From: Paraphysomonas bandaiensis
Taxonomy: Eukaryota; Protista; Chrysophyceae
Reading direction: 5' to 3'
NCBI GenBank assembly: GCA_965644295.1
Contig: CBFFRP010000499.1
Location: 1-25,006, forward strand
Length of the DNA: 25,006 nucleotides
The translations under genes and the position numbers were made by a program. Positions 1 through 25,006 of the stretch are shown here, in pieces; the stretch's first letter is position 1; every line of letters starts with the position of its first letter. The notes below the pieces were generated by a model. The model was not told the DNA's origin. It did not search any database and was given only the letters and a program-made list of their open reading frames with translations.

Positions 1-3000
1 CCCATATGATCTCCTCTGCAACATCATCACTAAATGGGTTACCAAGGCCCGGGCCAGAGGTCACACGGTAATCATTGCAGGCGACTTTAACGGATCCATG
101 GAAACGCACACCACGAATAGAGATATACGCCCACTAGCCGGTAAACTCCAGCTGTCGGCGCCACTAATCACACAATTACTCCAACGGCAAGCTTTTCACA
201 CATTCCACAGATTGGACAAGGGAATCTCGCGTATCGATCACATACTACATACGCCACTTCCACAGCATATGCGAATCACTGACACCGGATGCCTCAATTC
301 CCCCACCTTAATTGCAGCAGCGTTTGACCATAGGCCGGTTTGGGTTGGATTCAATATTACTGTAACACAAGATATCTCTTCCCCAGAGTCACACTTAAAA
401 ATACCTCCTCGCCTAAACATCAACCCAAGGGATCCTGAGGAGGTAAAAGCGTACACTGCCAAACTTCTCATGCTACACGCCCAACTGCCCCCTATAGACA
501 AGAACCTCAGCCCAACACTAGACCCAGAGACTGCAGCCACCCGACTAGCGGCGATACATCACATCACCTTGCAGGCAACGCTTACAGCAAAGGGTCCCCG
601 CTACAGCCGTCGCACGAGGCTCCATGACCGGTGTCAGCGAATTCGTTCACATTTTAAAGATGGTTTCTCCCCGGAAATGAGGGTAATTCAAGAAGGGATG
701 GTTATGGTAATAAAGATAGTTCAGAAAATGTTTAACTCAGCTGGATATAAAAGACACGGATGGCGTGGATCCCCATTACGCAATCCGATCCACGCGCTCA
801 TCACCGCCTGGCAGGAGCGCGGGAACTCGTACCTCCAAAACTCCACGGGACCTGCGAAAGGAATAGCCGACATCAACTTCAGGAATGATTACCGATCAGC
901 AGACCCCAGAGCCATTCTGAGCTGGACTGCCAAACAAGTCACCAAGAAGAACCTTCTACACATTGTGATTCGAATGCGAGGACTCTTGCACGGACGAGAC
1001 AGGACGGAGATGCGCAAGAGGCTCACAGACCGTACAAACCATATGGAAGCACTACTAGAACAGAGAAGACTACAAGCAGTACTGCAGAAGATAGGACTTA
1101 AAATCAAAACGCCACTTCGACTAACGACAGTGAGAACTACTGACGGGACACTTCTCACTACCCCGCAAGACATCCACGAAGGAATCAACAAACACTTTCG
1201 AGACCACCACGCGGAACCTGCAGGACTGGACCCAGTCGCACAAAGACTACAGGACGACCCCAACTGGTGGAAAACCCTCCTTGACCCTCAATCGGTGACT
1301 TCCCAGGAGCCCCTCCATCCGTGCTCGAACATACCCCTTACCCTACAACACGGACTACGACGTGCACTATGCACTAAAGTTAAACCAGAAATGGCGGACC
1401 TACTCGGAAAGGCTTTAGAGAAGGACATCACGCACGAAGAATTCTACTCCACCTTACATTCCATATCCTTCAACCGGGCTCCCGGACCCTCCATGGTCTC
1501 ATCCAACATGGTCAAATCCTGGCCTCCAGCCATACAACAGGAAGCATTCACCCTTATCAAGTCGCTCTGGAAGCACAAACACGTGCCTACTTGGTGGAGA
1601 GACAGAGTAATGACCCCCATACTCAAGAAACCGGGAGAACCCTCTTTTTCCAACCTTCGACCGATCGGTCTGCTCGAAATATCACGGAAAATTCTGACAA
1701 GAATAATCTCCCACAGGATACTCACAGTCTGGGAGGAACAGCAGATCCTACACCCGTCCCAACATGGATATCGCTGGAGAAATGGCACAGACACGGCCAT
1801 CTTAACGGTTCTAGCGGCCTCAGAGGCAGCCAGACGTCACAATGCCCAACACATCTGCACGCTCTGGGACTTCAAAAAAGCATTCGACTCCATAACACCT
1901 AATCTAATGAAACTAGCATGGGCTCGGCTAGGTGTCCCCGATGCTGTGGTTGAATGGTTTGGAGAATTAGACGCTGGGGGTCTCACATTCCCATGGACGC
2001 CGTTCATGGCGAACAACATGGAGCCACGCTCGTTGGCAGAACTTCTAGCTACCGACGGACACTTCCTTGCACAGTTCGTACTCGGATTTGAGGCCGTGAG
2101 AGGAATCACACAGGGGGGAACCGAATCCACTTGTGCCTGGGTGGCGCTACACGATATCCTTCTTACATGGTTAGACCTAGATCTTAGAGCAATCTGTCTT
2201 ACACCATCACCACTCCTACTGACCCCGAACTCAAAGAAAAAAGTCTCCTTCGCGGATGACATCACCACCATAGATGTGTCTATCACTCAAGCCCAGGAAA
2301 CGGCGATACGAATGTCGGCGTTCTGCAGCTTCTCGGGAATGGAACTCTCGGTACCTAAGGTTATCTGCACTTTTTTCCCTCACCTACGGGAAAATCTAGC
2401 CCAGGTCAAACAAACCGGACACATTACCTTATATGACTGGTATTGGAGACCCCAACCTGTACCAATACATACGACTCATGAATCGATACACTATTTGGGG
2501 GCTGATCTACCACTAACACTTACAGACACGGACTCATACAATTGGTGTACAAACTACCTAAAGGCAGCGGGCACACACCTTGGGATCAGGCACGCCTCAG
2601 CGGGTTGCAAAGTCATGGTTATAGAGACCCAAATCATCCCCACTCTACTTTACAAGGCCACCAAGGCTTCTTGGCCCCTGCAATATTATTACAAGAACAT
2701 CGATTCAACTTGCGCAAACCTTTACAGGAAAGCACTAAGCCTGAGTCCTGGTTACCCCACGGAAATGATCTACCTCTCTCTCAGGCATAATGGACTTGGA
2801 ATGAAACGCTTCTCAGACTCCGCTCAAGAACAAAAATGGGGCTCCCTACAGCGCGCCATAATCCTAGGCGGTGATGCCGGTGACGCAGCGCACTTTCTCC
2901 TAACACAGACTATCGCGCCGTACCCAAACTACCACCACTTTGCCTTAAGTCTGCGGGAATGGGGTACGGAGGTTGGCCTTACACTCCAACAACCCGACAT

Positions 3001-5053
3001 TCCGGAACCTCAAGATACCAACACCCTGACCAACATTATCCGCACATTAGAACTGGATGATGTAGCCGCGGATACATATCAGGCAATCTTCACCGACGGC
3101 TCATACACGCCTACAGCCCTATCCCCGCGCCGCATTACGCATGTACACCCACGTACAAGATGGGCACATTATGGAGGAGCGGCGGCAGTCTGGCTCCCCC
3201 CGGAGGATGAATGGAAGAACGGTACAACAAAAATACTGCGATTAGAGACACCCTTCAGCGACGTGCCTGGACTTGGCCCGTATGCATACGAGCTCATGGG
3301 AGCAGCAATGGCGCTTATACTGTCTGCGCGACTCCCATCACACATACCGATAAATACGGACTGTAAGGCCGTCTGCATACGCACACACGAAGCACTCTCC
3401 GCCAGACGTCGGGCACTGGGGCATCGTGCCAAAGGTGTACTGCTCGAAAGCATTGCAGCAAATAACGATTGCACAAGGACAGTAGCCTGGGTCCGATCAC
3501 ACCCCGAACGACGCACCTCTGATGAGTCTGAATGGACATATGAAGACAAAGGAATTTACATTGCCGACGCAGTAGCAGGAGGGGACTGGCTTGAGGTAGA
3601 TCGACTACTCGGACGACAAAATTACACTGTCTGTAACATGGAAGTGGACCAAGCCATCGAGAGAATACTCACCGAGGGTTTATGGCACTGGCGCCTAACT
3701 GGGGAACGACGGCCGTATCGCACTAGCCCCCTGCTCACGGATTTCCAATCCCTCCGTAATCAACGGACGCTGGAGGCATACACAGCTCTCCGAGACCAAC
3801 GCTACGGTCACAATCCCGACCGGGCTCCTGGATACTGGAAAGACAGCGGAGCACTACTTCCGCGCAAACTGGCGCAAGCAGATGGTGAACCATCAAAGGA
3901 CAAAGTGAGTTCCCACCTGCGCCAAAGAGTACTCAATGCAGCACTGACATGGGACAAATCCTTCAGCATAGGAAGAAACCGGGCGAAAACCAAACACGGA
4001 CTCGACATGGCTAAAGCCGTATGCTCTGACTGCGGATTTAGACTAGACTCACTCAAGCATATGTGTCTAGACTGCACAAACGACACCATAACGCAGATAA
4101 GGGAGTCTGCATTTCACAGCCACAAAAACGCGCTCCTAGAAGAAATGAGAAATCCGGAACTACCCCAATGGACCACCACTGTACTCCAGCGACTCTCCAG
4201 CAGGGCCTGGAACCCTTCCGTGCCACAGGTGGAGAGATTCTGGACGGGTACCATCACAACTACACAGCTTGAAATGGTTTTTGGAGATCACATCCATGAG
4301 TCACTGACATCCCAAGGACTGCGCAGCATCGAATCAGCGATCATCAAATTACTGCTACCGCTGTTCGCTGCAGCAAAGCTCATGATCCAAGATCGCGGAA
4401 GAAGATACGTGACCCTACGGAAAGGCCCCCCAAGGCTACTACCGCGGCCGAGTCCAAAGCACAGACAGAAACGGAAACGCCCAAGGGTGCTAAGATTACT
4501 AGGAATCCACAGACGAACCGAGACTGGAACACCGCCCACCGCACCTCTAAACCCTACCAGCCATACACAGAGGACCATAGCAACGGACCGTATGAAACCA
4601 ACAGGCCCTAGACAAAGGCGACGACGTCTCCGGCAACTCCACCTATGCCCAACGCCCAAACGGTGCATGGCGACACCGCCACATTCCACCACACCATCAA
4701 CCTCTCAGTCCACACATCTAGTGCTCTGTACACTCAGGACCTTAATACAGAACCCGGTACCTCAGAGTCAGGCGGAACCGTATCCCAAGGGGAGACCCCC
4801 GGACAACACGCGCCAGTGAGTCCTCAGACAGACGAGCAGGGCGAACTCACACACAACATCAAGAACGGAAGTGGTTGCACCTTGGTGCTTGCGGCGACGC
4901 ACAAGCAGCTTTTGTAGCGTTAAATAGTAGGATAATAGAATTTGTGCTGATTAGTTATGGGTAGAGGTCTAACTAGTAGACTAGTATTCAACTAGCCGCT
5001 ATATCGGAACGGGTTTTTAACGCCTATTGCTAAATAAAAAGACATTCAATATA
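1..5053 (+). mobile_element. Non-LTR retrotransposon (LINE) with APE, RT, RNase H and CCHC domains; 5' end lies outside the window
   Basis: One long ORF carries all the LINE domains. The 3' boundary (~5053, ...TTCAATATA) is where identity to the second copy at 18198-19384 stops. No poly(A) tail. Confidence 0.95.
2..4819 (+). CDS. LINE polyprotein (APE endonuclease, reverse transcriptase, RNase H, C-terminal Zn finger), 5'-partial
   Basis: The frame is open from base 2, upstream of the ATG at 98, and reads ...VIIAGDFNGS. APE motifs: GDFN, SRIDHI, FDHRPV. RT motifs: APGPS, RPIGLL, QHGYR, WDFKKAFDSI, GITQG, SFADD, YLG. RNase H motifs: IFTDGS, YELMG, NTDC, WVRSH, IADAVA. Zn finger: CSDC...HMCLDC. 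Confidence 0.95.
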   Translation, partial: PYDLLCNIITKWVTKARARGHTVIIAGDFNGSMETHTTNRDIRPLAGKLQLSAPLITQLLQRQAFHTFHRLDKGISRIDHILHTPLPQHMRITDTGCLNSPTLIAAAFDHRPVWVGFNITVTQDISSPESHLKIPPRLNINPRDPEEVKAYTAKLLMLHAQLPPIDKNLSPTLDPETAATRLAAIHHITLQATLTAKGPRYSRRTRLHDRCQRIRSHFKDGFSPEMRVIQEGMVMVIKIVQKMFNSAGYKRHGWRGSPLRNPIHALITAWQERGNSYLQNSTGPAKGIADINFRNDYRSADPRAILSWTAKQVTKKNLLHIVIRMRGLLHGRDRTEMRKRLTDRTNHMEALLEQRRLQAVLQKIGLKIKTPLRLTTVRTTDGTLLTTPQDIHEGINKHFRDHHAEPAGLDPVAQRLQDDPNWWKTLLDPQSVTSQEPLHPCSNIPLTLQHGLRRALCTKVKPEMADLLGKALEKDITHEEFYSTLHSISFNRAPGPSMVSSNMVKSWPPAIQQEAFTLIKSLWKHKHVPTWWRDRVMTPILKKPGEPSFSNLRPIGLLEISRKILTRIISHRILTVWEEQQILHPSQHGYRWRNGTDTAILTVLAASEAARRHNAQHICTLWDFKKAFDSITPNLMKLAWARLGVPDAVVEWFGELDAGGLTFPWTPFMANNMEPRSLAELLATDGHFLAQFVLGFEAVRGITQGGTESTCAWVALHDILLTWLDLDLRAICLTPSPLLLTPNSKKKVSFADDITTIDVSITQAQETAIRMSAFCSFSGMELSVPKVICTFFPHLRENLAQVKQTGHITLYDWYWRPQPVPIHTTHESIHYLGADLPLTLTDTDSYNWCTNYLKAAGTHLGIRHASAGCKVMVIETQIIPTLLYKATKASWPLQYYYKNIDSTCANLYRKALSLSPGYPTEMIYLSLRHNGLGMKRFSDSAQEQKWGSLQRAIILGGDAGDAAHFLLTQTIAPYPNYHHFALSLREWGTEVGLTLQQPDIPEPQDTNTLTNIIRTLELDDVAADTYQAIFTDGSYTPTALSPRRITHVHPRTRWAHYGGAAAVWLPPEDEWKNGTTKILRLETPFSDVPGLGPYAYELMGAAMALILSARLPSHIPINTDCKAVCIRTHEALSARRRALGHRAKGVLLESIAANNDCTRTVAWVRSHPERRTSDESEWTYEDKGIYIADAVAGGDWLEVDRLLGRQNYTVCNMEVDQAIERILTEGLWHWRLTGERRPYRTSPLLTDFQSLRNQRTLEAYTALRDQRYGHNPDRAPGYWKDSGALLPRKLAQADGEPSKDKVSSHLRQRVLNAALTWDKSFSIGRNRAKTKHGLDMAKAVCSDCGFRLDSLKHMCLDCTNDTITQIRESAFHSHKNALLEEMRNPELPQWTTTVLQRLSSRAWNPSVPQVERFWTGTITTTQLEMVFGDHIHESLTSQGLRSIESAIIKLLLPLFAAAKLMIQDRGRRYVTLRKGPPRLLPRPSPKHRQKRKRPRVLRLLGIHRRTETGTPPTAPLNPTSHTQRTIATDRMKPTGPRQRRRRLRQLHLCPTPKRCMATPPHSTTPSTSQSTHLVLCTLRTLIQNPVPQSQAEPYPKGRPPDNTRQ

Positions 5054-5157
5054 CATATATTGTTATTCATAATTCTCACTCTATCGTGTTCATTACTTAC
5101 ACTCTAATAATCACAACATTGTTTTACTATTATAAAGATCAATTCTTTATTTGGTAG

Positions 5158-8998: not shown

Positions 8999-9819
8999 TA
9001 TCCTGCGTTAGTTTTCGGTCCAATCGTGGTATATACACTGTGTGAATAATATTCGCTAAATGGTTTTAATAGAGACGAAATGTAAAATACCACGATATAA
9101 CTTGTTAGTTATTGGAGGTCATGCCGCTTTACACTTCGCCATGTCACAGAAGACTTATTGTCAGAGTAGAATAGTTGTATTAGCTCTACAACTAAACAAT
9201 GTGGTCCCAATAGCTTGTCATTGTAAATCAAAATGATGAATTATATGAACTAGTCCTTTTTTAGAAAGAACCATTGTCATCAATTATGCTCGATACAGCT
9301 ACGCATTGCTTACAGACATAGTCTTAAGGTCAAACCAGTGCAGCATAGCACAGGTGGAACTTAAGAAAAAAAATTAGTAAAAGAAGACAAAAACGAGATA
9401 TATAGTACATAGTAATATGGACGGAATTACCATCGAAATATGTAAACTACATCAAAATCAATTCATACAATTCTTTGAACGTTGGACTCACTGAATAATC
9501 AATTACAGTAATTACAATTGTAATATAATTATAATCATTCATTTGTCAATCACTGTATTATACATGGTGCATCAATAGTATTGATGGATTTTTTAAACCG
9601 GTCCTACAATACAATTACAATATATTGCAATATATTGTCAATGTATTGCAATATATTAGTATGACTAATCAGTAGGTAAACACATCCGTAGATTTCATTT
9701 TTAGTATTAGTCATTAAGATCACATGACAACCAAAAACCAACTGCTGCTTATCCTCTGAGCCATAATCGGTGACGTCAACATCACCATATTCATCCACAG
9801 AATTAATTGAAATATGCTA

Positions 9820-9935: not shown

Positions 9936-10255
9936 ATCATGTACATACCAGGGCCAGGCAACCGTTAATGACTCGTGGATCTGTACGTTTCTTAATTTTT
10001 TGAGCTGACTGAAGATTTTTAGTCGCATAGTCAACATTAGCTTCATTATCCTTTGTAATGTTGTAATCAATTTCTCGGTTATTTATATCCTTTTTGCACC
10101 CTACAGTTGAGAATCTTCTCTTATATGACTATCATAATATTGATTGCAATATATTGCAATAGTATTCTTTTAACAGAAACACTATTGATGGAATATTTGA
10201 CCAGTCCACCAATCCATATATTTTACAACGTATTGCAATACAATATATTGTTCCC

Positions 10256-11603
10256 TGCAATGGAACTCAGGTTGGGACCTGAGAGCCAAACTCTAAATAA
10301 GCTAAAACTCGCTTTAAGAGAGAGAATGTTGCTTATTATTAACCTATACTACTTCTGCAGTACTAAATGCTTCTCGGCACCCCAAGAAACTAAAGCACAA
10401 CTCACCAGCTATGCAGTTCAGTACTAAACAGAAAAGTGACGAGCTACAACAACCAACAAAGAGAGAACAAGCTTAACTAAAAAGAATGACGATGCGCTTG
10501 AGCGTTGACAGCCACACAGTGACTAAATCCAAATTTTCTGCGAAGGAGTGACGATATTTATGAATATTCTTGGAGAATTCTTCTTCTTCATACTCTACAC
10601 ATTAATGTATGGACTCTGCCGTATACACTCTCAACTGCTGCTCATCTAAACGATAATGGGCACTCGACCAATCAGCATTGAGAATAGGGAAAGCATTGGT
10701 TCAGTATTCGCTTCCTGTATTTATACAGTGTAGGGTACAGTATACTGACACCGTATACCTACGAGTGATATAGACGCATACATACGATAGAGGAATACTG
10801 CAAATACATCATATACAGTGTATACGGTATACAGTGCGGTTGCTGAGAGGAGATGCAGCTCGCTCCTAACTGCCATCTTAATGTGATTGCAGCACACATA
10901 CCGAACATACTTGTAAGCGAGCAGATTATCGTGAAAATTGAACAATATGTCCAGAGATGCATTACCATTGTACTCGCTAAAGACCACTGCTTCTTCAATT
11001 GCCGATATAGAGTACGAGGCGATATAGTATATTGACTGTTCAGCATCAGTACGAGGGTCCACACAGTGTGATGATCAAATGGAAGGTACCGTAAAATCAT
11101 GTAATCAGTACGTACAGTCATGACAGGTGATATATAGGTCCTTCTTCCAGACAGAGGTGGTCTATGGCAACCCTTAGTCACCATTAATTGGAAATGGATA
11201 TATGCACCACACAGAGGCACATAATAACGGTAAAGAAGCCGCAGACGCATCCACTGACTGCAGGAAAAGCACGTATACACTGTTTACGTACTATAGGTGA
11301 TTGTAGAAGCTACATATGTGCATTTACAGGCCACTGGTTGAATATAGAGCCATGTACACATATATACCATATATTAGGGTAAGGATACAACATATATATA
11401 TATTCTGTAGAAGGGTCACAACCTATACATATATGTGTGGGTGAAAGAGAGAAACTAGGTTAGTATGTACGCATATATATATGTATACATCCAAACTGTA
11501 ATAATAATAACTCTTCAAAAGAATTATATATCACAGCCCAGCATATAGAATAGAAGATAGTGCTGATGATTATAAACCTGCTTTAAACCTGCACAGGTTT
11601 ACA
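10256..11603 (-). repeat. 3' LTR
   Basis: Direct repeat of 15856-17203 with about 6 substitutions seen. Adjacent to the PPT. Confidence 0.97.
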
Positions 11604-11633
11604 CTACCCTCTCTCTCCTTCTCCTCCTTTCCC
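11604..11633 (-). other. Polypurine tract
   Basis: Minus strand GGGAAAGGAGGAGAAGGAGAGAGAGGGTAG lies directly before the 3' LTR and just after the pol stop. Confidence 0.92.
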
Positions 11634-11635
11634 GT

Positions 11636-14600
11636 CTATTCCTGGGTTGGGCCATCCACAGCGAGGATTTCGGGGTGGTGCTTGGTGATCGTATCATCCA
11701 CGAGAATCATGCTGGATTCATCGAATTCCCATTGACGACCCCACGCATAAACCATGTAATTATCAAAGCCATATAATTGCTTGTTGAGGTCAAATCGAAC
11801 GGTAATTTTCTTGCGACTCCCGCCCTTGTGATACCAACGGAGGTAGGTAAAAGGAACAACATAGCTGGAAGTTTCCCAGTCTGGAAGCTGTAGGGATTCA
11901 TAAAAAAGGTCCCCAAAGAATCTCAAATCCACGTATACTGTGTCCCCCGGTGATACTGAGGTAATGTTTTCCTTGCGCTTGTCTCGTATGAATCTTGTGG
12001 CCATATCCGTGTCCAAGGATAGGTGAAAAAGGAAAGGCTTACTCTGGCAGAAGTCATAGTACGCCTCACATAGGATATCAGGGGTATACGGAATATCAAG
12101 AACTTCTCCATCAGCATACTTAACCTTGAAAGTCATCGAAGTCCTCTTTCTGCAGTCTCCCTTGTAGCCAAGAATCTTATCGACCATGAACTGCTCCTGA
12201 TCTCGCATTGCAGCATTGAAAGCCTCCTCTGCCGAACCATAGAATAGCTCAAGATCCTCAACCGAAAACTTTTTTATTGCTCCACTTATCAGATTCCTAC
12301 AATCCACATCGTTTTTGTATTGATGGACAACTTGCATTGGACCCTTATGACGACACGCCAGTTTAGGATGTGGTTTTGGACCAGCATCAAACAAGACAAA
12401 ATCTCCTGGCGCATACATATTTTGGGGCATAAGTCTCGCTTGACTCGCTCTTTCTTCAACCAACTGATCTTGAAATTTCTTCGAAGCCTCTCGGAGCACT
12501 GTTAGATTCTCATTTAGCTGTTTTAGCAGCATGTGGGACGGTTCACCCTCACAATCTTTCAAAAGATCCTTATATACCGCGTCCACGGATCCAAATACAA
12601 GCTCAAACGGCGTAAATCCAGTCTCTGAGGACACATGATCATTGAGAATGTATTGTACGGAAGGAATCTTTGTAACATCATCGAAGATATCTTGGATCCT
12701 TGTGTCAAATACTAGTGCTCGCAAATGCCGCACCACTTCCTTTATTGGCCTCTCTGTACCGTTAGCATGTTTATCTGCAATGCTAAACACATGGCGCATT
12801 CCCATGAGCTGAACTAACTCTGCGAATAACTTCGAGGTAAGGTCAGTACCCAAATCTGAGATAATCATGTCAGTATGTCCAAAATTGCTCCAATATATCC
12901 ACACAGAAGCAGCTAAATTTTTCGCTGTAACGCCTATTATCGCTCTGAGAAATGCATGTTTGCTGAACAAATTAACAATGACCAGGATATGTGATTCACC
13001 GTTCTTCCCTGCTGGTGTTATCTTCACAGCATCTATTCCAATGACACTTCTCGCATGTGGGGGTTTCAGTGTTCTAGGGATCTTAATTAAACGGTTTTTA
13101 CGCTCTCTCCGTGTTTTCTCACAGCACGCACACGAACTCACAAAGTCTGCTATTTCTTTATATGGAATCTGATGCCCAGGACACAGTTTATTCAGCCGAT
13201 TCCACATCTCTTTAGCTCCCCAGTGGCCTGATTGGGCATTATGTACTTCCTCCATAAGTTCCTGGGCCCTTAATCTAGATACAGGCTCAGGGGCTGTCTC
13301 TGATATATCAGTTAGGTCGAATACGTTCATGAGGGCGTGGAATGTCCAATCATCATCACTATCCTCTTCACCCATTGTTCTATCATGATCCGAATCATCC
13401 ATGGAGATCATAAATAAACGCGATAGGGCGTCGGCCACAGTATTTTCTCTTCCACTGATATGTTGTACAACAAAATCAAACGATTGTAGATAAACTCTCC
13501 ATCTGACTATTTTCGGCACTTCTGACGCCTCCATCCATCTTAGATTGTTATGGTCTGTCTGGACGATGAAGTGTTTCCCAATCAGGTAATACGCAAAATG
13601 TCTCACCGCATAAAAGATGGCATATCCTTCTTGCTCAATTGTTGACCATCTCATAGCTTCAGGTGAAAATTTCTTTGAACACATGGCTATAACTTGGTAT
13701 ACAACTTCACCATTTTCGAGGCGTTTTACTTGGAATAGGACTGCTCCAATACCGAACTCACTAGCATCCGTACGCAAGAACCACTCCAATTCGTAGTCTG
13801 GGTAAAAGACTGAACAAGCCTCTTGAAGTCCAGTTTTATAGTCCTCCCATTCCTGCCTATAATCTATTTTCCACGTGGTTTCGTCCCAATTAAAATCTTG
13901 CTTTGTAAGGTCCGTCAAATGCTTCACCTTGTCCTTGTAGTTCTCAACAAATGGCGCAAAGAACACACCCATACCCAGCATTGACCTCACCTTTTTCTGA
14001 CGATTCCCACTCTCCGGAAAAGGAATTTTCAAAATAGCTTCCTTCCTATCATTGGTCAACTCATAAGAATGATGTCTGCAATTGTAACCAAAAAAATGAA
14101 CTTCTCTTTTCCCTAACCATGTCTTAGCAAATTTCAATACAACGCTGTGTTCAATGCAACGATCAAGGAACAAGTCGAGCTTCCTATACGCATCATCATA
14201 ATCCTTTGCCAATATTAAAACGTTGTCGAACAGACATATAGCCCAGTCAAAATCACCAAATAATTCCATAATAGTTTGTTGAAGCTTTCCACTGCCCGGT
14301 CCTATACCCTCAGGAACATATAACGGCTGGAATTGACCCCATGGGGTCTGAATCGATAGTTTGGCCGAGGTTTGCTCAGTCACGGGTATCTGGTGGAATG
14401 CGTTCGTTAGATCAATGTCTAGGAAGATTTCATACTCAATAATACGATCCAGCTGATGACGCACATTCGGAATATAGTAATGTGGGATTTCCATATATTT
14501 ATTGATGATTCGATAGTCACCACATAGTCTGATAAATGGCTTAGTCGCCTTAGGGGCCACTGTGAGACATGAAGCCCAGGGTGATGAACTTTTTACGTAA

Positions 14601-15550
14601 ATATACCCTCTCAGACGCATAAACTCTTGTTCAGTAGCCTCATAGAGCCTAGGATTGATAGGTCGTGCCTTTGGTTTCAGTCGGTGGGGTAGATCCTCTC
14701 TAAATTTTATATCCAATGGCTCGATCCCCTTCATACCTGTCCACTTCTCCGGTACAAAAGCATTCACGCCTTTCCCACGTAGAAGTTCTTCAACTTTAGT
14801 GGATTTTCGAAATTCAGGGTCAATATGGTCCTCGAACATACTTATAAACTCACTGATTGCATCTTCTCGCGATTTACCCAGAAATAGTGACACATCCCCA
14901 AAACTCGTAGGCAGAGGGTTATCCTTTTCTTCAGAAGCTTCTTCTGCTGATGAAAAACTCCACGGCTGTAGGTATTGTTCGACGTCTGACACATGCAAAG
15001 TCTGCAACTCTGGTAAATGCATATTCTCGGTCCTAACTGCCTCAACTTCTGATTTAAAGAACTGCCATAGTTCTCCAAGAATCGCCGGCATACCTATGAT
15101 GACTTCGTTTTGTAGCATCTCAAGGACAACGAAATCTCCGGAGTATATAATATCTTGCTGTTCACTCGATATCTTCATGTCTAATTGGATTGTTGTATCA
15201 CTTTCAAGTCTTGTCTTGTTGTCAGCCAGCCCGATCTTCAAATTCTTTTTAATAATTCTCTTGTTCTCTAGTTGTTCTCTTATTTTTGTGAAAATTCTCT
15301 TACTGATGTAGTTCGCACACAGGGCTCCAGTGTCGAACAAAACTCTAATCTTATCTGACATTACAACATTATTATCAAAATTGCTGCTTAACAGCTGTCC
15401 ATTAAAATGCACCATGTCCGGGGTAGCTTGAAAATTTCTCACCAAATCCCCCACAATGGCACATAACTCATGTGGAGGCATCTTCGACTCATCAGGATTC
15501 ACAAGTATGTTTTCATTATCCTGGTGAGTGCCGGAGACGCCTCCTACCAG
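11636..15550 (-). CDS. pol: Gypsy Pol polyprotein (protease, RT, RNase H, integrase, chromodomain, extra C-terminal region)
   Basis: Protease LFDTGA. RT DIDLTNAFHQ and CLFDNVLI. RNase H TDASEFG, EQEGYA, TDHNNL, VADALSR. Integrase HHCC, GIDAV, SDLG, NGTER, KGPM. Chromo-like FMVDKIL...FKVKY. The frame is open back to 15550. Confidence 0.95.
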   Translation of the reverse strand: MVGGVSGTHQDNENILVNPDESKMPPHELCAIVGDLVRNFQATPDMVHFNGQLLSSNFDNNVVMSDKIRVLFDTGALCANYISKRIFTKIREQLENKRIIKKNLKIGLADNKTRLESDTTIQLDMKISSEQQDIIYSGDFVVLEMLQNEVIIGMPAILGELWQFFKSEVEAVRTENMHLPELQTLHVSDVEQYLQPWSFSSAEEASEEKDNPLPTSFGDVSLFLGKSREDAISEFISMFEDHIDPEFRKSTKVEELLRGKGVNAFVPEKWTGMKGIEPLDIKFREDLPHRLKPKARPINPRLYEATEQEFMRLRGYIYVKSSSPWASCLTVAPKATKPFIRLCGDYRIINKYMEIPHYYIPNVRHQLDRIIEYEIFLDIDLTNAFHQIPVTEQTSAKLSIQTPWGQFQPLYVPEGIGPGSGKLQQTIMELFGDFDWAICLFDNVLILAKDYDDAYRKLDLFLDRCIEHSVVLKFAKTWLGKREVHFFGYNCRHHSYELTNDRKEAILKIPFPESGNRQKKVRSMLGMGVFFAPFVENYKDKVKHLTDLTKQDFNWDETTWKIDYRQEWEDYKTGLQEACSVFYPDYELEWFLRTDASEFGIGAVLFQVKRLENGEVVYQVIAMCSKKFSPEAMRWSTIEQEGYAIFYAVRHFAYYLIGKHFIVQTDHNNLRWMEASEVPKIVRWRVYLQSFDFVVQHISGRENTVADALSRLFMISMDDSDHDRTMGEEDSDDDWTFHALMNVFDLTDISETAPEPVSRLRAQELMEEVHNAQSGHWGAKEMWNRLNKLCPGHQIPYKEIADFVSSCACCEKTRRERKNRLIKIPRTLKPPHARSVIGIDAVKITPAGKNGESHILVIVNLFSKHAFLRAIIGVTAKNLAASVWIYWSNFGHTDMIISDLGTDLTSKLFAELVQLMGMRHVFSIADKHANGTERPIKEVVRHLRALVFDTRIQDIFDDVTKIPSVQYILNDHVSSETGFTPFELVFGSVDAVYKDLLKDCEGEPSHMLLKQLNENLTVLREASKKFQDQLVEERASQARLMPQNMYAPGDFVLFDAGPKPHPKLACRHKGPMQVVHQYKNDVDCRNLISGAIKKFSVEDLELFYGSAEEAFNAAMRDQEQFMVDKILGYKGDCRKRTSMTFKVKYADGEVLDIPYTPDILCEAYYDFCQSKPFLFHLSLDTDMATRFIRDKRKENITSVSPGDTVYVDLRFFGDLFYESLQLPDWETSSYVVPFTYLRWYHKGGSRKKITVRFDLNKQLYGFDNYMVYAWGRQWEFDESSMILVDDTITKHHPEILAVDGPTQE

Positions 15551-15814
15551 TTAGGCTCTGGTCTGGTCCCGCTTTAGGACCTTGGGGTATCCATCTCTCT
15601 CAATCGTAGCCAACTTCTTCATTAACCATTGCCTGGTCTCTTTAGCTGATACATGCGATCCATCATCCCTTTCATCATCTTTATCAAGAGTGCGCTCGCC
15701 CTCCAAAATACTGAGTCTAGATTCGAGTGCGGCAGATCTATCCGCTGGTAAGTCCATTTTCACAACCAAAGACTGTAAAAGAGTCTTTATAGTGTCTTCT
15801 TCGTCAATTTCCAT
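15551..15814 (-). CDS. Very short gag-position ORF (87 aa), probably an internally deleted gag
   Basis: ATG at 15814, 41 nt after the 5' LTR. Coiled-coil-like start (LQSLVVKM...LESRLSILE). No capsid-sized domain or Zn knuckle. Same frame as pol. Confidence 0.65.
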   Translation of the reverse strand: MEIDEEDTIKTLLQSLVVKMDLPADRSAALESRLSILEGERTLDKDDERDDGSHVSAKETRQWLMKKLATIERDGYPKVLKRDQTRA

Positions 15815-15855
15815 TGTTAACAATATTTTCCGGCTTTTAACCCAAGTAAATTTAC

Positions 15856-17203
15856 TGCAATGGAACTCAGGTTGGGACCTGAGAGCCAAACTCTAAATAA
15901 GCTAAAACTCGCTTTAAGAGAGAGAATGTTGCTTATTATTAACCTATACTACTTCTGCAGTACTAAATGCTTCTCGGCACCCCAAGAAACTAAAGCACAA
16001 CTCACCAGCTATGCAGTTCAGTACTAAACAGAAAAGTGACGAGCTACAACAACCAACAAAGAGAGAACAAGCTTAACTAAAAAGAATGACGATGCGCTTG
16101 AGCGTTGACAGCCACACAGTGACTAAATCCAAATTTTCTGCGAAGGAGTGACGATATTTATGAATATTCTTGGAGAATTCTTCTTCTTCATACTCTACAC
16201 ATTAATGTATGGACTCTGCCGTATACACTCTCAACTGCTGCTCATCTAAACGATAATGGGCACTCGACCAATCAGCATTGAGAATAGGGAAAGCATTGGT
16301 TCAGTATTCGCTTCCTGTATTTATACAGTGTAGGGTACAGTATACTGATACTGTATACCTACGAGTGATATAGACGCATACATACGATAGAGGAATACTG
16401 CAAATACATCATATACAGTGTATACGGTATACAGTGCGGTTGCTGAGAGGAGATGCAGCTCGCTCCTAACTGCCATCTTAATGTGATTGCAGCACACATA
16501 CCGAACATACTTATAAGCGAGCAGATTATCGTGAAAATTGAACAATATGTCCAGAGATGCATTACCATTGTACTCGCTAAAGACCACTGCTTCTTCAATT
16601 GCCGATATAGAGTACGAGGCGATATAGTATATTGACTGTGCAGCATCAGTACGAGGGTCCACACAGTGTGATGATCAAATGGAAGGTACCGTAAAATCAT
16701 GTAATCAGTACGTACAGTCATGACAGGTGATATATAGGTCCTTCTTCCAGACAGAGGCGGTCTATGGCAACCCTTAGTCACCATTAATTGGAAATGGATA
16801 TATGCACCACACAGAGGCACATAATAACGGTAAAGAAGCCGCAGACACATCCACTGACTGCAGGAAAAGCACGTATACACTGTTTACGTACTATAGGTGA
16901 TTGTAGAAGCTACATATGTGCATTTACAGGCCACTGGTTGAATATAGAGCCATGTACACATATATACCATATATTAGGGTAAGGATACAACATATATATA
17001 TATTCTGTAGAAGGGTCACAACCTATACATATATGTGTGGGTGAAAGAGAGAAACTAGGTTAGTATGTACGCATATATATATGTATACATCCAAACTGTA
17101 ATAATAATAACTCTTCAAAAGAATTATATATCACAGCCCAGCATATAGAATAGAAGATAGTGCTGATGATTATAAACCTGCTTTAAACCTGCACAGGTTT
17201 ACA
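15856..17203 (-). repeat. 5' LTR
   Basis: 1348-bp repeat. In element sense it reads TGTAAACC...CCATTGCA. Confidence 0.97.
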
Positions 17204-17288
17204 TCCCTATCCCTGGTCACTACTATCAGCGAATATTTTACAATCATAGACATACAAAATCGTTCACAGTTCACAGTCAATATACTTC

Positions 17289-17371
17289 CCTCAACAACGT
17301 CAAACTCACACCTCTTCGTAGTGCTATGGGGGATAAGTACCAGAGATATTTCTTCGGGAATCTAACGTGAG
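17289..17371 (+). ncRNA. HDV-like ribozyme candidate (degenerate P1)
   Basis: P2 CUCAC (17305-09) pairs with GUGAG (17367-71). P3 ACC/AGU closes L3 UCUUCGU. An AGUA/GAA motif closes P4. J4/2 is CUAAC with a candidate catalytic C at 17362. Confidence 0.6.
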
Positions 17372-17695
17372 CCACATATATAGTATATAGTCAGCAGATA
17401 ATTTTCTGCCCGCTCATAGCCAAATACTTGTGTGGTACAAGGAACACTAATTAGTGTCACTTGTGTAGACGTTTTTGGGCCTCGACGAATATATAAGGAT
17501 CCGAGACTGGGCCTACCTGAAGGGTAACCGGGGGTATTGGGCTGCCTGTTGAAGTCAAGCATCCGGGCTGTTCACCTCAAGGACTCAAAAATCCTGAAGT
17601 CAGCAGGTGTCAGGTATATCAACCTTCTGCTTGCTCACTGCATTTACTTTGACTGATAGAAAGTTAATCACTAGTTAGTTAAGTTGTTGTGCTAC
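17290..17695 (+). mobile_element. Non-autonomous ribozyme-headed retroelement, copy 1 (LINE-homologous tail block deleted)
   Basis: Reverse complement of 17739-18109 and homologous to 22845-23293. Retains the terminal AGTTAATCACTAGTTAGTTAA...GCTAC seen in copy 3. Confidence 0.8.
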
Positions 17696-17721
17696 ATTAG
17701 TTCTGACTCTTACACGCCTTT

Positions 17722-18109
17722 GGTGCAACCACTTTTGCTCTATCAATCAAAGTAAATGCAGTGAGCAAGCAGAAGGTTGATATACCTGACACCTGCTGAC
17801 TTCAGGATTTTTGAGTCCTTGAGGTGAACAGCCCGGATGCTTGACTTCAACAGGCAGCCCAATACCCCCGGTTACCCTTCAGGTGGGCCCAGTCTCGGAT
17901 CCTTATATATTCGTCGAGGCCCAAAAACGTCTACACAAGTGACACTAATTAGTGTTCCTTGTACCACACAAGTATTTGGCTATGAGCGGGCAGAAAATTA
18001 TCTGCTGACTATATACTATATATGTGGCTCACGTTAGATTCCCGAAGAAATATCTCTGGTACTTATCCCCCAGAGCACTACGAAGAGGTGTGAGTTCGAC
18101 TTTGTTGAG
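17722..18109 (-). mobile_element. Non-autonomous ribozyme-headed retroelement, copy 2 (3'-truncated); ribozyme candidate at 18028-18109
   Basis: Inverted copy of 17290-17660. Keeps AAGTGGTTGCACC, the start of the block shared with the LINE 3' UTR. Confidence 0.8.
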
Positions 18110-18197
18110 AGATATTATAAACACCTTGTCAACCTGGTAATTGTTGCACTCTCTAATTTCTAATGTATTTATGCCAAGGTTTTTCTTCTACTTGACA

Positions 18198-19384
18198 TAT
18201 ATTGAAGGTCTTTATATTTAGCAATAGGCGTTAAAAACTCGTTCCGATATAGTGGCTAGTTGAATGCTAGATATACTAGCTAGGCCTCTACCCATAACTA
18301 ATCAGCACAAACTTTATTATCCTACTATTTATCGCTACAGAAGCTGCTTGTGCGTCGCCGCAAGCACCAAGGTGCAACCACTTCCGTTCTTAATGTGGTT
18401 TGTGAGGTCGCCCTGCTCGTCTGTCTGAGGACTCACTGGCGCGTGTTGTCCGGGGGTCTCCCCTTGGGATAAGGATCCGCCTGGCTCTGAGGTACAGGGT
18501 TCTGTATTAAGGTCCTGAGTGTACCGAGCACTAGATGTGTGTACTGAGAGGTTGATGGTGTGGTGGAATGTGGCGGTGTCGACATGCACCGTCTGGGCGT
18601 TGGGCATAGGTGGAGTTGCCGGAGACGTCGTCGCCGTTGTCTAGGGCCTGTTGGTTTCATACGGTCCGGTGCTATGGTCCTTTGTGTATGGTTGGTAGGG
18701 TTCATATGTGCGGTGAGCGGTGTTCCAGTCTCGGTTCGTCTGTGGATTCCTAGTAATCTTAGCACCTTTGGGCGTTTCCGTTTCTGTCTGCGTTTTGGAC
18801 GCGGCCGCGGTAGTAGCCTTGGGGGACCTTTCTGTAGGGTGACGTATCTTCTACTTCGATCTTGGATCATTAGCTTTGCTGCAGAGAAAAGCGGTAGAAG
18901 TAATTTGATGATCGCTGATTCGATGCTGCGCAGTCCTTGGGATGTCAGTGACTCATGGATGTGATCTCCAAAAACCATTTCAAGCTGTGTAGTTGTGATG
19001 GTACCCGTCCAGAATCTCTCCACCTGTGGCACGGAAGGGTTCCAGGCCCTGCTGGAGAGTCGCTGGAGTACAGTGGTGGTCCATTGGGGTAGTTCCGGAT
19101 TTTTCATTTCTTCTAGAAGCGCGTTTTTGTGGCTGTGAAATGCAGACTCCCTTATCTGCGTTATGGTGTCATTTGTACAGTCTAGACACATAAGCTTGAG
19201 TGAGTCTAGTCTAAATCCGCAGTCCGTGTTTGGTTTTCGCCCGGTTTCTTCCTATGCTGAAGGATTTGTCCCATGTCAGTGCTGCATTGAGTACTCTTTG
19301 GCGCAGGTGGGAACTCACCTTATCCTTTCATGGTCCACCATCTGCTTGCGCCAATTTGCGCGGAAGTAGTGCTCCGCTGTCTTT
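18198..19384 (-). mobile_element. 5'-truncated copy of the LINE, flanked by a 23-bp TSD
   Basis: Aligns to ~3838-5053 in reverse. The perfect direct repeat CAAGGTTTTTCTTCTACTTGACA lies at 18175-18197 and 19385-19407. There is a 29-bp internal deletion near 19222. Confidence 0.96.
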
Positions 19385-19959
19385 CAAGGTTTTTCTTCTA
19401 CTTGACAAGGCAGTTACGCCAAAATTTCTATGACGAGTTTTTTCATTGTGCCTTCCAAAGATAAGCAATACATCACGTCATAATATTGAAATAATCATAG
19501 AAATTTTTGTTGAGCTTGAAGAAGTATAGCAATGCTATTGACCAACACATTGCCTCTAAACTTACTTAGCTATTGATGCAACTTAGTAGATAATTAGTAG
19601 AGCTAGTAGTATCTCTACGCGCTGACTGCTATAGTTATAGTCAGTAAGTTGATATGAAGCTTGGTAATAGGTAAAAAAATTCAAGTAACTCTTTCCTTTT
19701 ATCGAACAACAATTAATTTTAAACGGATACTTCTCAAAACAACACAACAATAAAATGGATAAAAAACACGCTGCTCAGTCTCAGAAGTCTTTTTTCAACA
19801 ATGATTTACTATTTACATTCATAGCCATTATTCTTCTACCCATTTATATGTTAGAGCATCATAACACTGCCAAAAGTATCACCATACCGTCAATATATAC
19901 AATTTTACAGATGTATGTCGTGTCCTGTATATAGTTCACCAAACAAGGTGCTTCGATTT

Positions 19960-21197: not shown

Positions 21198-22094
21198 TAT
21201 TTTATGAGCTCAACGGGTCAAATGATTTCGGTGTCGACTATAGCAGCCTTCCTTTCTGATGTACAGGATTAACGTGGTGTATAGTAGCTGCTACTGTCCG
21301 CGCTATTGAAGTGTGTAGTATTTGTCATAGGCACCATTTATTTGAGGTTTAAGAGTAGTTTGTCTTACTTTTTCTATCATTAGAAATCCCGGTAAATAGT
21401 AAGGTATAAAGCAGACGAAAGCATTGGGTTCGTGCTGATTAGTTCGTGAGTCATCTATGCAGTTTTTAAAACTGAAATTTATCCGTCTATTATTTATTCG
21501 ATTATTCTGTTTGCTACTTACATTACCCATTAGTTTAGATTAAAATCGGGTAAGCAATGAAATAAGGGTATTCTGTTCCCATCGAGTCAATACATCCTCA
21601 ATTATCAATTAATTACAATTGTAATATCATTCCCATTATCATTGTCATTTACCATTTATAGTGTTGCCACTCCTACTACCAACCAATATTTTACAATCTT
21701 GGATAGACACTATAGTTTACAGTTTACAGTCAATGTATTTCAGTTTCAGTAACATGATTCATGCCACTTAATGAAATTCATATTGTACTGCTTTTAACTT
21801 TAAACTACTGTATTATTCAGTTAAAGGTTTTAATTTGAAAACTTTAAAATACTGCTTCTAATAGGTTTAAAAAACTCAACACGCGCTCTACTGCACCGGT
21901 AAGTACGAAGCCTGAGATGTGTATGGTATCTTTATGTAGCGTAGGGGCTATGTATGTCGAAGGACGTCGAAGTGTAAACAAAAAGAGTCAGGAAGTGGAT
22001 ATCGCTCAAGTTATATTAAATTCTATTGAGTTCCATTTAATACATATTATCTATATGCTTTCTTTATTATAATGGTTAATATTGAGCGAATTAA

Positions 22095-22844: not shown

Positions 22845-23293
22845 GTAGCAACACAATTTAACTAACTAGTGATTAACTCTGATATCCTACTATTTAGCGC
22901 TACGAAAGCTGCTTGTGTGTCACTGCAAGCACCTATGTGCAACCACTTTTGCTCTATCAATCAAAGCAAATGCAGTGAGCAAGCAGAAGGTTGATATACC
23001 TGACACCTGCTGACTTCAGGATTTTTGAGTCCTTGAGGTGAACAGCCCGGATGCTTGACTTCAACAGGCAGCCCAGTCTCGGATCCTTATATATTCGTCG
23101 AGGCCCAAAAACGTCTACACAAGTGACACTAATTAGTGTTCATTGTACCACACAAGTATTTGGCTATGAGCGGACAGAAAATTATCTGCTGACTATATAC
23201 TATATATGTGGCTCACGTTAGATTCCCGAAGAAATACCTCCGGTACTTATCCCCCAGAACACTACGAAGAGGTGTGAGTTCGACTTTGTTGAG
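22845..23293 (-). mobile_element. Non-autonomous ribozyme-headed retroelement, copy 3 (most complete tail)
   Basis: Body matches copies 1 and 2 except for a 30-bp deletion. 22883-22948 matches LINE 3' UTR 4869-4934 at 59/66 nt without gaps. No TSD found. Confidence 0.85.
23212..23293 (-). ncRNA. HDV-like ribozyme candidate (best-paired copy)
   Basis: CUCAAC...CUCAC-ACC-UCUUCGU-AGU-GUUCUGG-GG-GAUA-AGUA-CCGGAGG-UAUU-UCUUCGG-GAA-U-CUAAC-GUGAG. P4 is fully paired; P1 and P3 are imperfect. Confidence 0.65.
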
Positions 23294-23413
23294 CGTGCCA
23301 TTCATCATCGCAGTGAAATATGGAACTTAGGAGTAGTACAAGAAGACAAGTTAGGAAAAAACTAATACCGTGTATATTTTTTCTAGATAGTTCATATGAT
23401 AGCTAGAGACTTA

Positions 23414-23720
23414 CAGGGATAGGGAACAATATATTGCAATACTATTGTTAGGTAGCGTTCCATCAATAGTATTGATGGATTTTTTAAACCGGCCCTACAA
23501 TACTATTGCAATATATTGCAATATATTGTACAATATATTGCAATATATTAGTATGACTAATCAGTAAGTAAACACATCCGTAGTTTTCATTTTTAGTACT
23601 TGCCATATTTTATAAGGTCTAAGGTCACTTGATAATCAAACCCACTACTCTTAACTAATTAAAAGTTTCCTCATACTCATCCTCTGAGCCATCATCGGTG
23701 ACATCATCATCACCATAAGT
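23414..23720 (-). mobile_element. End of a second hAT-family copy: TIR plus subterminal repeats
   Basis: TIR CAGGGATAGGGAACAATATATTG, arrays of CAATATATTG and TATTGCAATA palindromes, and homology to 9570-9788. Confidence 0.85.
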
Positions 23721-25006
23721 CGGTGTGATCATGAAACCTGGTAAAGTGATTTCACCAGGTTTCATATATGGAAATGTTTCATATAAGTGCTTATTTGAAG
23801 TCTGTATTAATATTAGTTATAACTTAGTTGTTGTATATTATCAATTATATATATTATTTTAAAAATATTTTACTAAAATACTGTATTATATTGTTACTTC
23901 TCATATAAATCTACTGTATTACTACTTATGAAAATCTCACATCAACGTAACACTACTATATATATATTATGCACAGACAACACATACACGAAGTAATAAA
24001 ATGCAGACACAATATCCCTGAATTAATTACGCTTCACCGAAAACGATATTTTATTTGAAGTAATTCTGCAACACTAAGTTCTCGTACAAAATATTCTTCT
24101 TTTCCGCATCATGTAATCGATGCAGTCGATCAGTTTGATCTTGCACTGTAGACATAAGCATAAAAGAATTTCGACCATCACTACAATGAACAGCTTGTTG
24201 AGGTGCAAGAGACACACCAGTATCATCACAAGCACCAAGAGAAGCAGTACGTGCCACAGGGATAGTAGGAGGTACAGGCGGTTCGGAAACACCAACAATA
24301 GATGCAGGCTGAGCAGAGGGATCGTGCTGTACAGGTGAGGGAGCCACTTCTCTGCTTGATACGATCTGCTTCATCTCGTCTCTCAACTCCATACACATAG
24401 CCTGGGACTCTTTCAGTTGTTGCATCAACTCTTTGACGACAGCATCCTGGTGAAGGGGAGGGGGTGGATGAGGAATACCCCCATCCTGGTGGGTGGGAGG
24501 GGATGCATGAGAAATACTTCTATCCTCAATCGTGATTACTTCGTCATCATGGTACTTCCCCTGCACAATAAAAGTCAAAAGTTAAATAAAATATCCAAAG
24601 CATAAAAGCAGACATTTCTTACGACTTTACTCCGCTTCGGTTTCTTAGAAGAGATCTTCTCGACCAGTTCCTGCGCCTTCTTCATGGCGCAGGCCTTCTT
24701 GCGCCGCCCACACACTTTTGGCACCACTATACTGTTGTCCGAATGAACTTTCTTGGTTCTCCGGCCAGCCCCCTTTCGCTTTCCTTCAGAGGGTTCCTGG
24801 TCCCAGCCATCCGTCTCAACAACAACAAATGACCCCGTTTCATCCTTGTTTGGTCCTCTCTCCGGGACATAGGTAAAGTCATGGATTTCAAACCAATTAC
24901 CTAAGGAAGATATCAGTCTATCATGGTCCTCAAACTCCAGAGGAAGATATCTGTATTCCTTCTTAAACTTCGAGATCCCCTGTACGCGGAACCACTGTTC
25001 CATTGT
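23721..25006. mobile_element. Probable unclassified element nested in the hAT copy, running off the right edge
   Basis: hAT homology stops at ~23717-23720. The new sequence starts CGGTGTGATC and is followed at once by a 12-bp inverted repeat (23731-23765). Confidence 0.45.
24051..25006 (-). CDS. Hypothetical protein, 5'-partial, at least two exons
   Basis: Two ORFs join in phase 0 across a 62-bp GTAAG...TGCAG intron (24622-24561), giving KRSKV|GKYHDD. Basic NLS-like clusters, a Pro-rich linker and a coiled coil. Confidence 0.65.

Follow-up and report, generated by a model that had tools for sequence, protein, structure and literature searches.

A probable SINE-type retroposon family with a LINE 3' UTR tail in the chrysophyte Paraphysomonas bandaiensis

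Overview

The genome of the chrysophyte Paraphysomonas bandaiensis very probably harbours a SINE-type non-autonomous retroposon family of ~490-510 nt, non-coding and without poly(A), whose members are composites ending in a LINE 3' UTR. Each is built from a ~90-nt conserved 5' module that always starts CCCTCAAC, a hairpin-rich body and a tail that represents a whole LINE 3' UTR. Judged by homology, the tail appears to stem from the type of SET-endonuclease-RT LINE found in the window, the whole 25,006-nt stretch of DNA that was analysed; it holds a conserved stem-loop and a terminal motif. The abundant pair of LINE and parasite is real, and its ~1,400 recognisable 5' ends represent on the order of 1% of the 62.5-Mb genome. 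This documents an abundant SINE/LINE pair in a poorly studied protist lineage, with clean tail homology and with subfamilies recognisable by an older or a fresher form of the tail. The head is the most conserved module of the element, yet it is without small-RNA ancestry and apparently incompatible with Pol III.

Element copies in the window

The window comprises the first 25 kb of contig C499, in a eukaryotic assembly of 62.5 Mb in 669 contigs. It contains three copies of the element, two of the partner LINE and one LTR retrotransposon:

1-5055, plus strand: partner LINE, with its ORF extending to 4819 and its 3' UTR at 4820-5055; the contig start cuts 3,561 nt into the ~8.6-kb element
10255-16154: Ty3/gypsy element, with LTRs at 10255-10554 and 15855-16154 (300 nt, 100% identical)
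17288-17713, plus strand: SINE-like copy 1, with 74 nt of the tail block missing and a 3' truncation at the junction with copy 2
17723-18111, minus strand: SINE-like copy 2, the inverted partner of copy 1, truncated at family position ~357
18196-19388, minus strand: 5'-truncated copy of the partner LINE, 95% identical to 3835-5053 and 84 nt from the 5' end of copy 2
22846-23295, minus strand: SINE-like copy 3, with its 5' end at 23295; family similarity ends ~60 nt short of the true 3' end
22875-22957, minus strand: stem-loop block of copy 3 resembling the LINE 3' UTR, 59/66 identical to window 4869-4934
23210-23295, minus strand: conserved 5' module of copy 3 (family nt 1-86), a candidate HDV-like fold, or a plain hairpin followed by the P4 hairpin

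An earlier note on this DNA had described three copies with a common 5' start. All three are confirmed, copies 2 and 3 lying on the minus strand (strand was absent from that note); the common start is likewise real, but across the family at large it takes the form CCCTCAAC and not CTCAAC. The match between a 66-nt block of copy 3 and the LINE 3' UTR was recounted from the alignment and again gives 59/66, and a repeat search of the window aligns 81 nt at 84% identity (LINE 4862-4942 with copy 3 22875-22955). The further statement that the last ~35 nt of the element differ from the LINE proved to be an artefact of the truncated copy 3, which loses family similarity ~60 nt short of the true 3' end; full-length copies carry the LINE terminal motif.

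Copies 1 and 2 lie inverted to each other as a pair, 98% complementary over arms of 374 nt. The window copies are 96-99% identical among themselves and only ~76-82% identical to the best copies elsewhere in the genome. Because their mutual identity is so far above that to other copies, the three are local, rearranged duplicates that go back to a single old insertion.

Other repeats are also present in the window. A repeat family at 9570-9789 and 23461-23717, in blocks 92-96% identical with CAATATATTGCAATATATTG-type internal palindromes, adjoins copy 3 and sits upstream of the Ty3/gypsy element; contigs of three marine metatranscriptomes cover window 23414-23717. The 69 nt directly upstream of copy 1 (17220-17288) recur 4.4 kb off at 21673-21741 with 80% identity and probably mark the border of a further repeat. 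The Ty3/gypsy element encodes an intact 1,288-aa pol-type ORF (RT, RNase H, integrase), which together with its identical LTRs indicates a very recent insertion.

Family size, termini and target-site duplications

Genome searches reveal a large, dispersed family. With copy 3 as the query, 3,249 first-look candidates were returned, the best 61 scored matches being spread over many contigs, and a second query returned 3,142 first-look candidates, of which the best 74 matches were scored. Exact matches to the 25-nt 5' end number 392, and allowing up to three mismatches raises the count to 1,378, compared with zero for the reversed control. The body motif lies at the expected distance behind 237 of the 392 perfect heads, indicating that these heads belong to the SINE-like element. 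As is characteristic of SINEs, the element is short (489-510 nt), non-coding (longest stop-free stretch of 60-94 aa), dispersed and abundant.

Both termini are fixed. Across 27 copies aligned with their flanks, the 5' end reads CCCTCAACAAAGTCGG... and the 3' end ...AAGACATTCACTAC(T), with no poly(A) at the 3' end and with unrelated flanking sequence on either side. These fetched copies share 69-89% identity with their majority-rule sequence, which provides the working coordinates, and the sample is skewed towards old copies since scoring covers only the 40 candidates most like the query. Target-site duplications (TSDs), scored at a minimum of eight matching bases, flank seven of the 13 testable copies (those with both ends intact) with 8-14 matching bases, compared with 1.6% of shuffled flank pairs; TSDs of variable length at fixed ends are a further SINE hallmark. 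A complete 489-nt copy of the young subfamily B (L021:2480-2968) is bounded by a perfect 12-13 bp TSD. Copy number, shared ends and TSDs, which the earlier note had proposed as a genome-wide check of its reading, all bear out a dispersed mobile family.

The LINE-derived tail

The 188-nt tail of the subfamily-B copy L021:2480-2968 is 84.6% identical to the LINE UTR and colinear with it to its last bases. The corresponding LINE segment spans window 4866-5052 on the plus strand, beginning 46 nt past the stop codon. The old-type tail, which is that of the window copies, also aligns colinearly, with internal deletions and 72% identity counting gaps. Full-length SINE copies and the LINE have in common the terminal motif ..AACGCCTATTGCTAA..AAGAC.TTC, and the 3' part of the element thus has a homologue in the 3' end of a resident LINE, as is usual for SINEs with a LINE partner. 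The first ~75 nt of the shared tail adopt a conserved stem-loop fold; at one stem pair, the LINE and the young SINE type have G-C where the old type has A-U (9 G-C, 7 A-U, 3 G-U). A shared stem-loop of this kind is as expected of an RNA element that the LINE reverse transcriptase would recognise. Tails ending ..GCTAATAATAAGAC.TTCCATAT were considered as a possible sister LINE and set aside: where the sequence upstream is readable (L021, L055), they belong to SINE subfamily B.

Tail homology is what points to mobilisation by this particular LINE. As the tails are 72-85% identical to it, not identical, a closer sister LINE may be the actual driver. In the mechanism that we infer, element RNA would come from a source other than Pol III, namely read-through, Pol II, or an internal start. 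The LINE protein would then recognise the shared 3' UTR in trans, nick AT-rich DNA and copy the RNA by target-primed reverse transcription (TPRT), which would leave the TSDs of 8-14 bp.

The partner LINE

The partner LINE begins TCAACATTGTGG... in two full-length copies with different flanks, 3,561 nt upstream of window base 1, and seven LINE copies match from that same first base. At the opposite terminus, 30 LINE 3' ends are 93-100% identical and end ...TTTTTAACGCCTATTGCTAAATAAAAAGACATTCAATAT, with the terminal unit duplicated in some. The LINE family is young and multicopy. In one copy, a single frame, open from the third base, spans at least 1,203 aa and continues into the frame of the window ORF. 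The LINE part upstream of the window encodes a SET domain (PF00856, E=6e-9); in the window part, RVT_1 is significant and the endonuclease match is weak (E=0.0044, below the cut-off). The designation "APE-RT-RNase H" in the earlier note needs amending in its last term, as neither Pfam (E<=5) nor a PDB sequence search detects RNase H in the C-terminal 673 aa (window 2798-4816).

When the LINE is read from window 1-4819 together with L044:3-3611 (minus strand) and L043:2981-6601, no early ATG is seen in the open frame. The product would consist of a ~860 aa N-terminus of no recognised family, followed by SET, the weak endonuclease match and RT. One A-run varies by 2 nt in length between LINE copies, and this difference interrupts the frame in one copy but not in others.

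The two families also meet in the genome. Four of the 30 LINE copies (L055, L063, L064, L068) have their 3' junction inside a SINE copy, three of these junctions falling within ~25 bp of one and the same antisense AT-rich stretch, and SINE copies occur in nested or inverted groups on many contigs. The LINE junctions within SINEs and the SINE clusters suggest a target preference that piles elements up.

Subfamilies and activity

A set of 100 heads, listed from among the 392 perfect ones, resolves into three subfamilies told apart by one hairpin:

Subfamily A: CCGGAGA-TATT-TCTCCGG
Subfamily B: CCGGAGAG-ATT-CTCTCTGG
Subfamily C: CCGGAG-TTATTT-CTCTGG

Nt 1-52 are invariant across all three, in a sample chosen for a perfect first 25 nt. 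Subfamily B is the commonest among the listed heads, with many that do not differ from one another over 80 nt, which indicates recent activity of the family; the SINE/LINE pair is probably still active. An initial reading of the 27 fetched copies as an old and inactive family was dropped, since pattern counts and the 100 heads reveal a young subfamily.

Head-to-tail SINE dimers occur at L021:~2009-2040 (plus strand) and at L023 ~1452 (minus strand). At the junctions, the tail is cut after GCTAATAATA or GCTAAAACAA, ~14 nt before the normal end, and CCCTCAAC of the next unit follows directly behind. Both dimers carry the variant AAAGGCC, and this shared variant possibly reflects a dimeric subfamily or a template switch by the RT.

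Transcription and the 5' module

The head has no recognisable small RNA ancestor. The earlier note had seen no tRNA, 5S or 7SL head in the sense orientation, and Rfam and ARAGORN extend this to both strands: no Rfam family matches on either strand (the window at the gathering threshold, the copy regions at E<=10 and six other loci at E<=5), and ARAGORN finds no tRNA on either strand at eight loci. The only Rfam signals at relaxed E are chance miRNA-like matches from the inverted pair. In this respect the element departs from the SINE definition, in which a small RNA gene supplies the head together with an internal Pol III promoter. Two metagenome scans for relatives in other species, one with a body pattern and one with a head pattern, gave 0 matches.

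No A or B box is found in a usable place or orientation, the sole B-box-like match being antisense at the extreme end of the element. The sense strand contains a T4 run at nt 26-29 in all subfamilies and T5 runs at 108 and 452 in subfamily B. Given these runs and the lack of usable A/B boxes, Pol III transcription appears unlikely from the sequence. Assembled contigs suggest that the family is transcribed. A sequencing run of the same organism covers the unique gene at 24017-24500 and leaves unique intergenic DNA uncovered, and it is on this basis taken as RNA; it contains hundreds of SINE-family contigs. A piece resembling the family consensus is also present among the assembled contigs of two marine metatranscriptomes.

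One explanation of the conserved 5' module, to which we give somewhat less than an even chance, is that it acts as an internal promoter or start, either Pol II initiator-like or unconventional Pol III, with the RNA starting at CCCTCAAC. Most SINE heads hold the promoter (PMC7245038; PMC4494074), which would accord with the constancy of nt 1-52 between subfamilies, and two ordinary hairpins would suffice as the head fold. TCAACA stands at both the SINE and the LINE start and could be a common start signal, though it is only 6 nt long. The Pol III version of this explanation has to contend with T4-T5 runs that would stop the polymerase and with A/B boxes that are neither properly placed nor oriented, and a head unlike any small RNA family also counts against a promoter module.

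A candidate HDV-like ribozyme in the head

A second explanation, put forward tentatively, is that the first ~86 nt form an HDV-like ribozyme that would cut 5' of C1, freeing the RNA from a read-through transcript and setting its 5' end. The earlier note had called the head HDV-like, and the ribozyme stays a candidate: a matching topology can be drawn and the L3 and J4/2 motifs fit, whereas P3'/P1' spacing and covariance models fail. Starting from the TSD-defined nt 1, the helices can be drawn in HDV order:

P1, nt 1-6/40-45: CCCUCA/UGGGGG, 6 bp
P2, nt 15-16,18-22/80-86: GG(A)CUCGC/GUGAGCC, 5-7 bp
P3, nt 23-25/33-35: ACC/GGU, 3 bp
P4, nt 53-59/64-70: perfect 7-bp hairpin
P1.1: 1 bp
L3: UUUUCGU, fits the U...CG. 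pattern
J4/2: ends C-U-A-A-C directly before P2', fits C.AA

Conserved core positions of L3 and J4/2 have been described for R2, HDV and CPEB3 (PMC3774820), and the candidate fits them: the C and G in L3 and the putative catalytic C and constrained A in J4/2 are all present as sequence matches. A relaxed HDV descriptor fires at 0.5-1% of anchored positions without the core motifs and at ~1e-5 with L3 and J4/2 included (11 of 514,276 positions, four of the 11 being SINE 5' ends), although it was loosened after the sequence had been seen. Differences between subfamilies are confined to the P4 apex and wobbles and to the region downstream of P2', and P4 is the only helix that changes at the subfamily level among the 100 heads listed; P4 is a dispensable, variable helix in HDV-like ribozymes (PMC3774820). 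The CCC/GGG orientation of P1 and the 1-bp P1.1 both have precedent in L1TcRz (PMC3185411; PMC4035085). The T4-T5 runs and missing A/B boxes, in speaking against Pol III, also favour this explanation.

The geometry is less accommodating. The HDV-like family is defined by a P1' immediately 3' of P3' (PMC3774820), but here a 3-4 nt spacer (GUUC) separates the two; because of it, the canonical HDV descriptor yields no solution. J1/4 is 7 nt long, and 4 extra nt lie between P4 and the putative catalytic C. The Rfam HDV, CPEB3 and drz models give no match on nine copies even at relaxed E (<=10), and RF00094 (HDV_ribozyme) has no match in the whole genome, so that the fold escapes the covariance models in six scans and genome-wide. 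The minimum free energy fold is a nested hairpin that uses the spacer and competes with P2/P3, and the head is no more stable than shuffled sequence (z=-0.74). In 34 copies, neither the HDV-like nor the nested model displays covariation beyond shuffles, and the two fit equally well (87.1% versus 88.3% paired). Loss of a P1 pair (G43U, G44A) did not keep some sub-subfamilies from multiplying. The partner LINE itself has no such fold at its 5' end, as judged with the relaxed descriptor from -30 to +12 of the LINE start.

A ribozyme at the front end is therefore best regarded as a plausible guess, modelled on sequence and no firmer than a candidate. Were it to exist, it would have arisen independently of the LINE and would contain an unusual 3-4 nt insertion at the P3/P1 crossover, in a promoterless SINE borne by read-through; this fuller scenario is equally speculative. 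If the fold cleaves, this would be the first SINE known to us to have gained a ribozyme from a source other than its LINE; the range of geometries accepted for HDV-like ribozymes would grow, and SINE formation in a stramenopile would have a route that bypasses Pol III. Should the fold prove inactive, the element would be an ordinary SINE with an orphan head.

Relationship of the head to the LINE 5' end

It is very improbable that the element is an internally deleted LINE of the SIDE/NARTc/RIME type, with both ends in common with the LINE. Its tail is indeed a LINE 3' UTR, and its first bases share TCAACA with the LINE 5' end. However, the SINE starts CCCTCAACA.. and the LINE TCAACAT.., and that hexamer is all they have in common. 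BLAST comparison of the SINE with the 5' regions of two full LINE copies (3.5 kb each) gives nothing better than E=1.3. The check proposed in the earlier note, whether the LINE 5' UTR matches the head, thus has a negative outcome. Among the matches listed (contigs up to C130), moreover, no perfect 25-mer lies within 1 kb of the 5' matches of ~70%-identical LINE families. The element shares no 5' end with the autonomous LINE of the window, and since its head matches nothing in the 5' 3.5 kb of that LINE, the two are a classical composite SINE/LINE pair with an orphan SINE head, and the element is no deletion derivative. The analogy to NARTc, RIME and SIDE elements drawn earlier thus fails at the head, which is unlike the LINE 5' part, and at the LINE, whose 5' end has no HDV-like fold.

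The notion that only local duplications or fragments of a LINE 3' UTR exist, with no mobile family, can be dismissed: the window copies are indeed mutual duplicates (96-98% identity), but the family's 1,378 5' ends are dispersed, its termini are fixed, and its copies have TSDs and unrelated flanks, all of which refute the notion. The two outcomes against which the earlier note had weighed its reading, purely local copies lacking TSDs or fixed ends and a mere fragment of a longer LINE, both fail because there are many copies with fixed ends and TSDs and the element is no fragment of a longer LINE. A dispersed family of non-autonomous retroposons, tailed by the 3' UTR of the window LINE, is upheld as genuine.

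Comparison with known systems

No description of a SINE was found in the literature for heterotrophic stramenopile-type protists, and as far as the literature shows, this LINE/parasite pair is undescribed for the chrysophyte host lineage. Several better-characterized systems offer points of comparison. NARTc, RIME and SIDER elements of trypanosomatids inherit the Pr77 HDV-like ribozyme and share the 5' end of their LINE (PMC3185411; PMC4035085). The Paraphysomonas element is likewise non-autonomous and LINE-dependent, with a candidate fold that begins at nt 1 and, as in L1TcRz, has a CCC...GGG P1 and a minimal P1.1. In contrast to those elements, its head is unrelated to the LINE 5' end, the LINE is devoid of an HDV-like fold and the ribozyme is a candidate only.

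R2 SIDEs of Drosophila are internal deletions of R2 that insert site-specifically in 28S rDNA (PMC3414825), and R2 HDV-like ribozymes have a canonical core with P1' directly after P3' (PMC3774820). Common to R2 SIDEs and the present family are a non-autonomous lifestyle, a LINE 3' UTR used for TPRT (in our element, putatively) and a precise 5' end. The Paraphysomonas element differs in that it is not an internal deletion, is not specific to 28S and has no canonical ribozyme core. Perere-3 of Schistosoma carries at its 5' end a twister-variant ribozyme, which has been shown experimentally and resides on an autonomous element (PMC8501958). The resemblance lies in the idea of a 5' self-cleaving RNA that sits beside the TSD and fixes the 5' end of a non-site-specific non-LTR element; the ribozyme class is different, and that of Perere-3 is proven and located on the autonomous element itself.

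Classical SINE/LINE pairs unite tRNA-, 5S-, 7SL- or snRNA-headed SINEs with CR1/L2/RTE-type LINEs (PMC7245038; PMC4494074). Unlike these, the Paraphysomonas SINE has a head without recognisable small-RNA origin, lacks A/B boxes and contains T4-T5 runs. In other respects it resembles them: it is a short non-coding composite whose 3' part, including the stem-loop and terminal motif, is copied from the partner LINE, it has no poly(A), variable-length TSDs and a high copy number, and the tails of its subfamilies stand at differing distances from the LINE.
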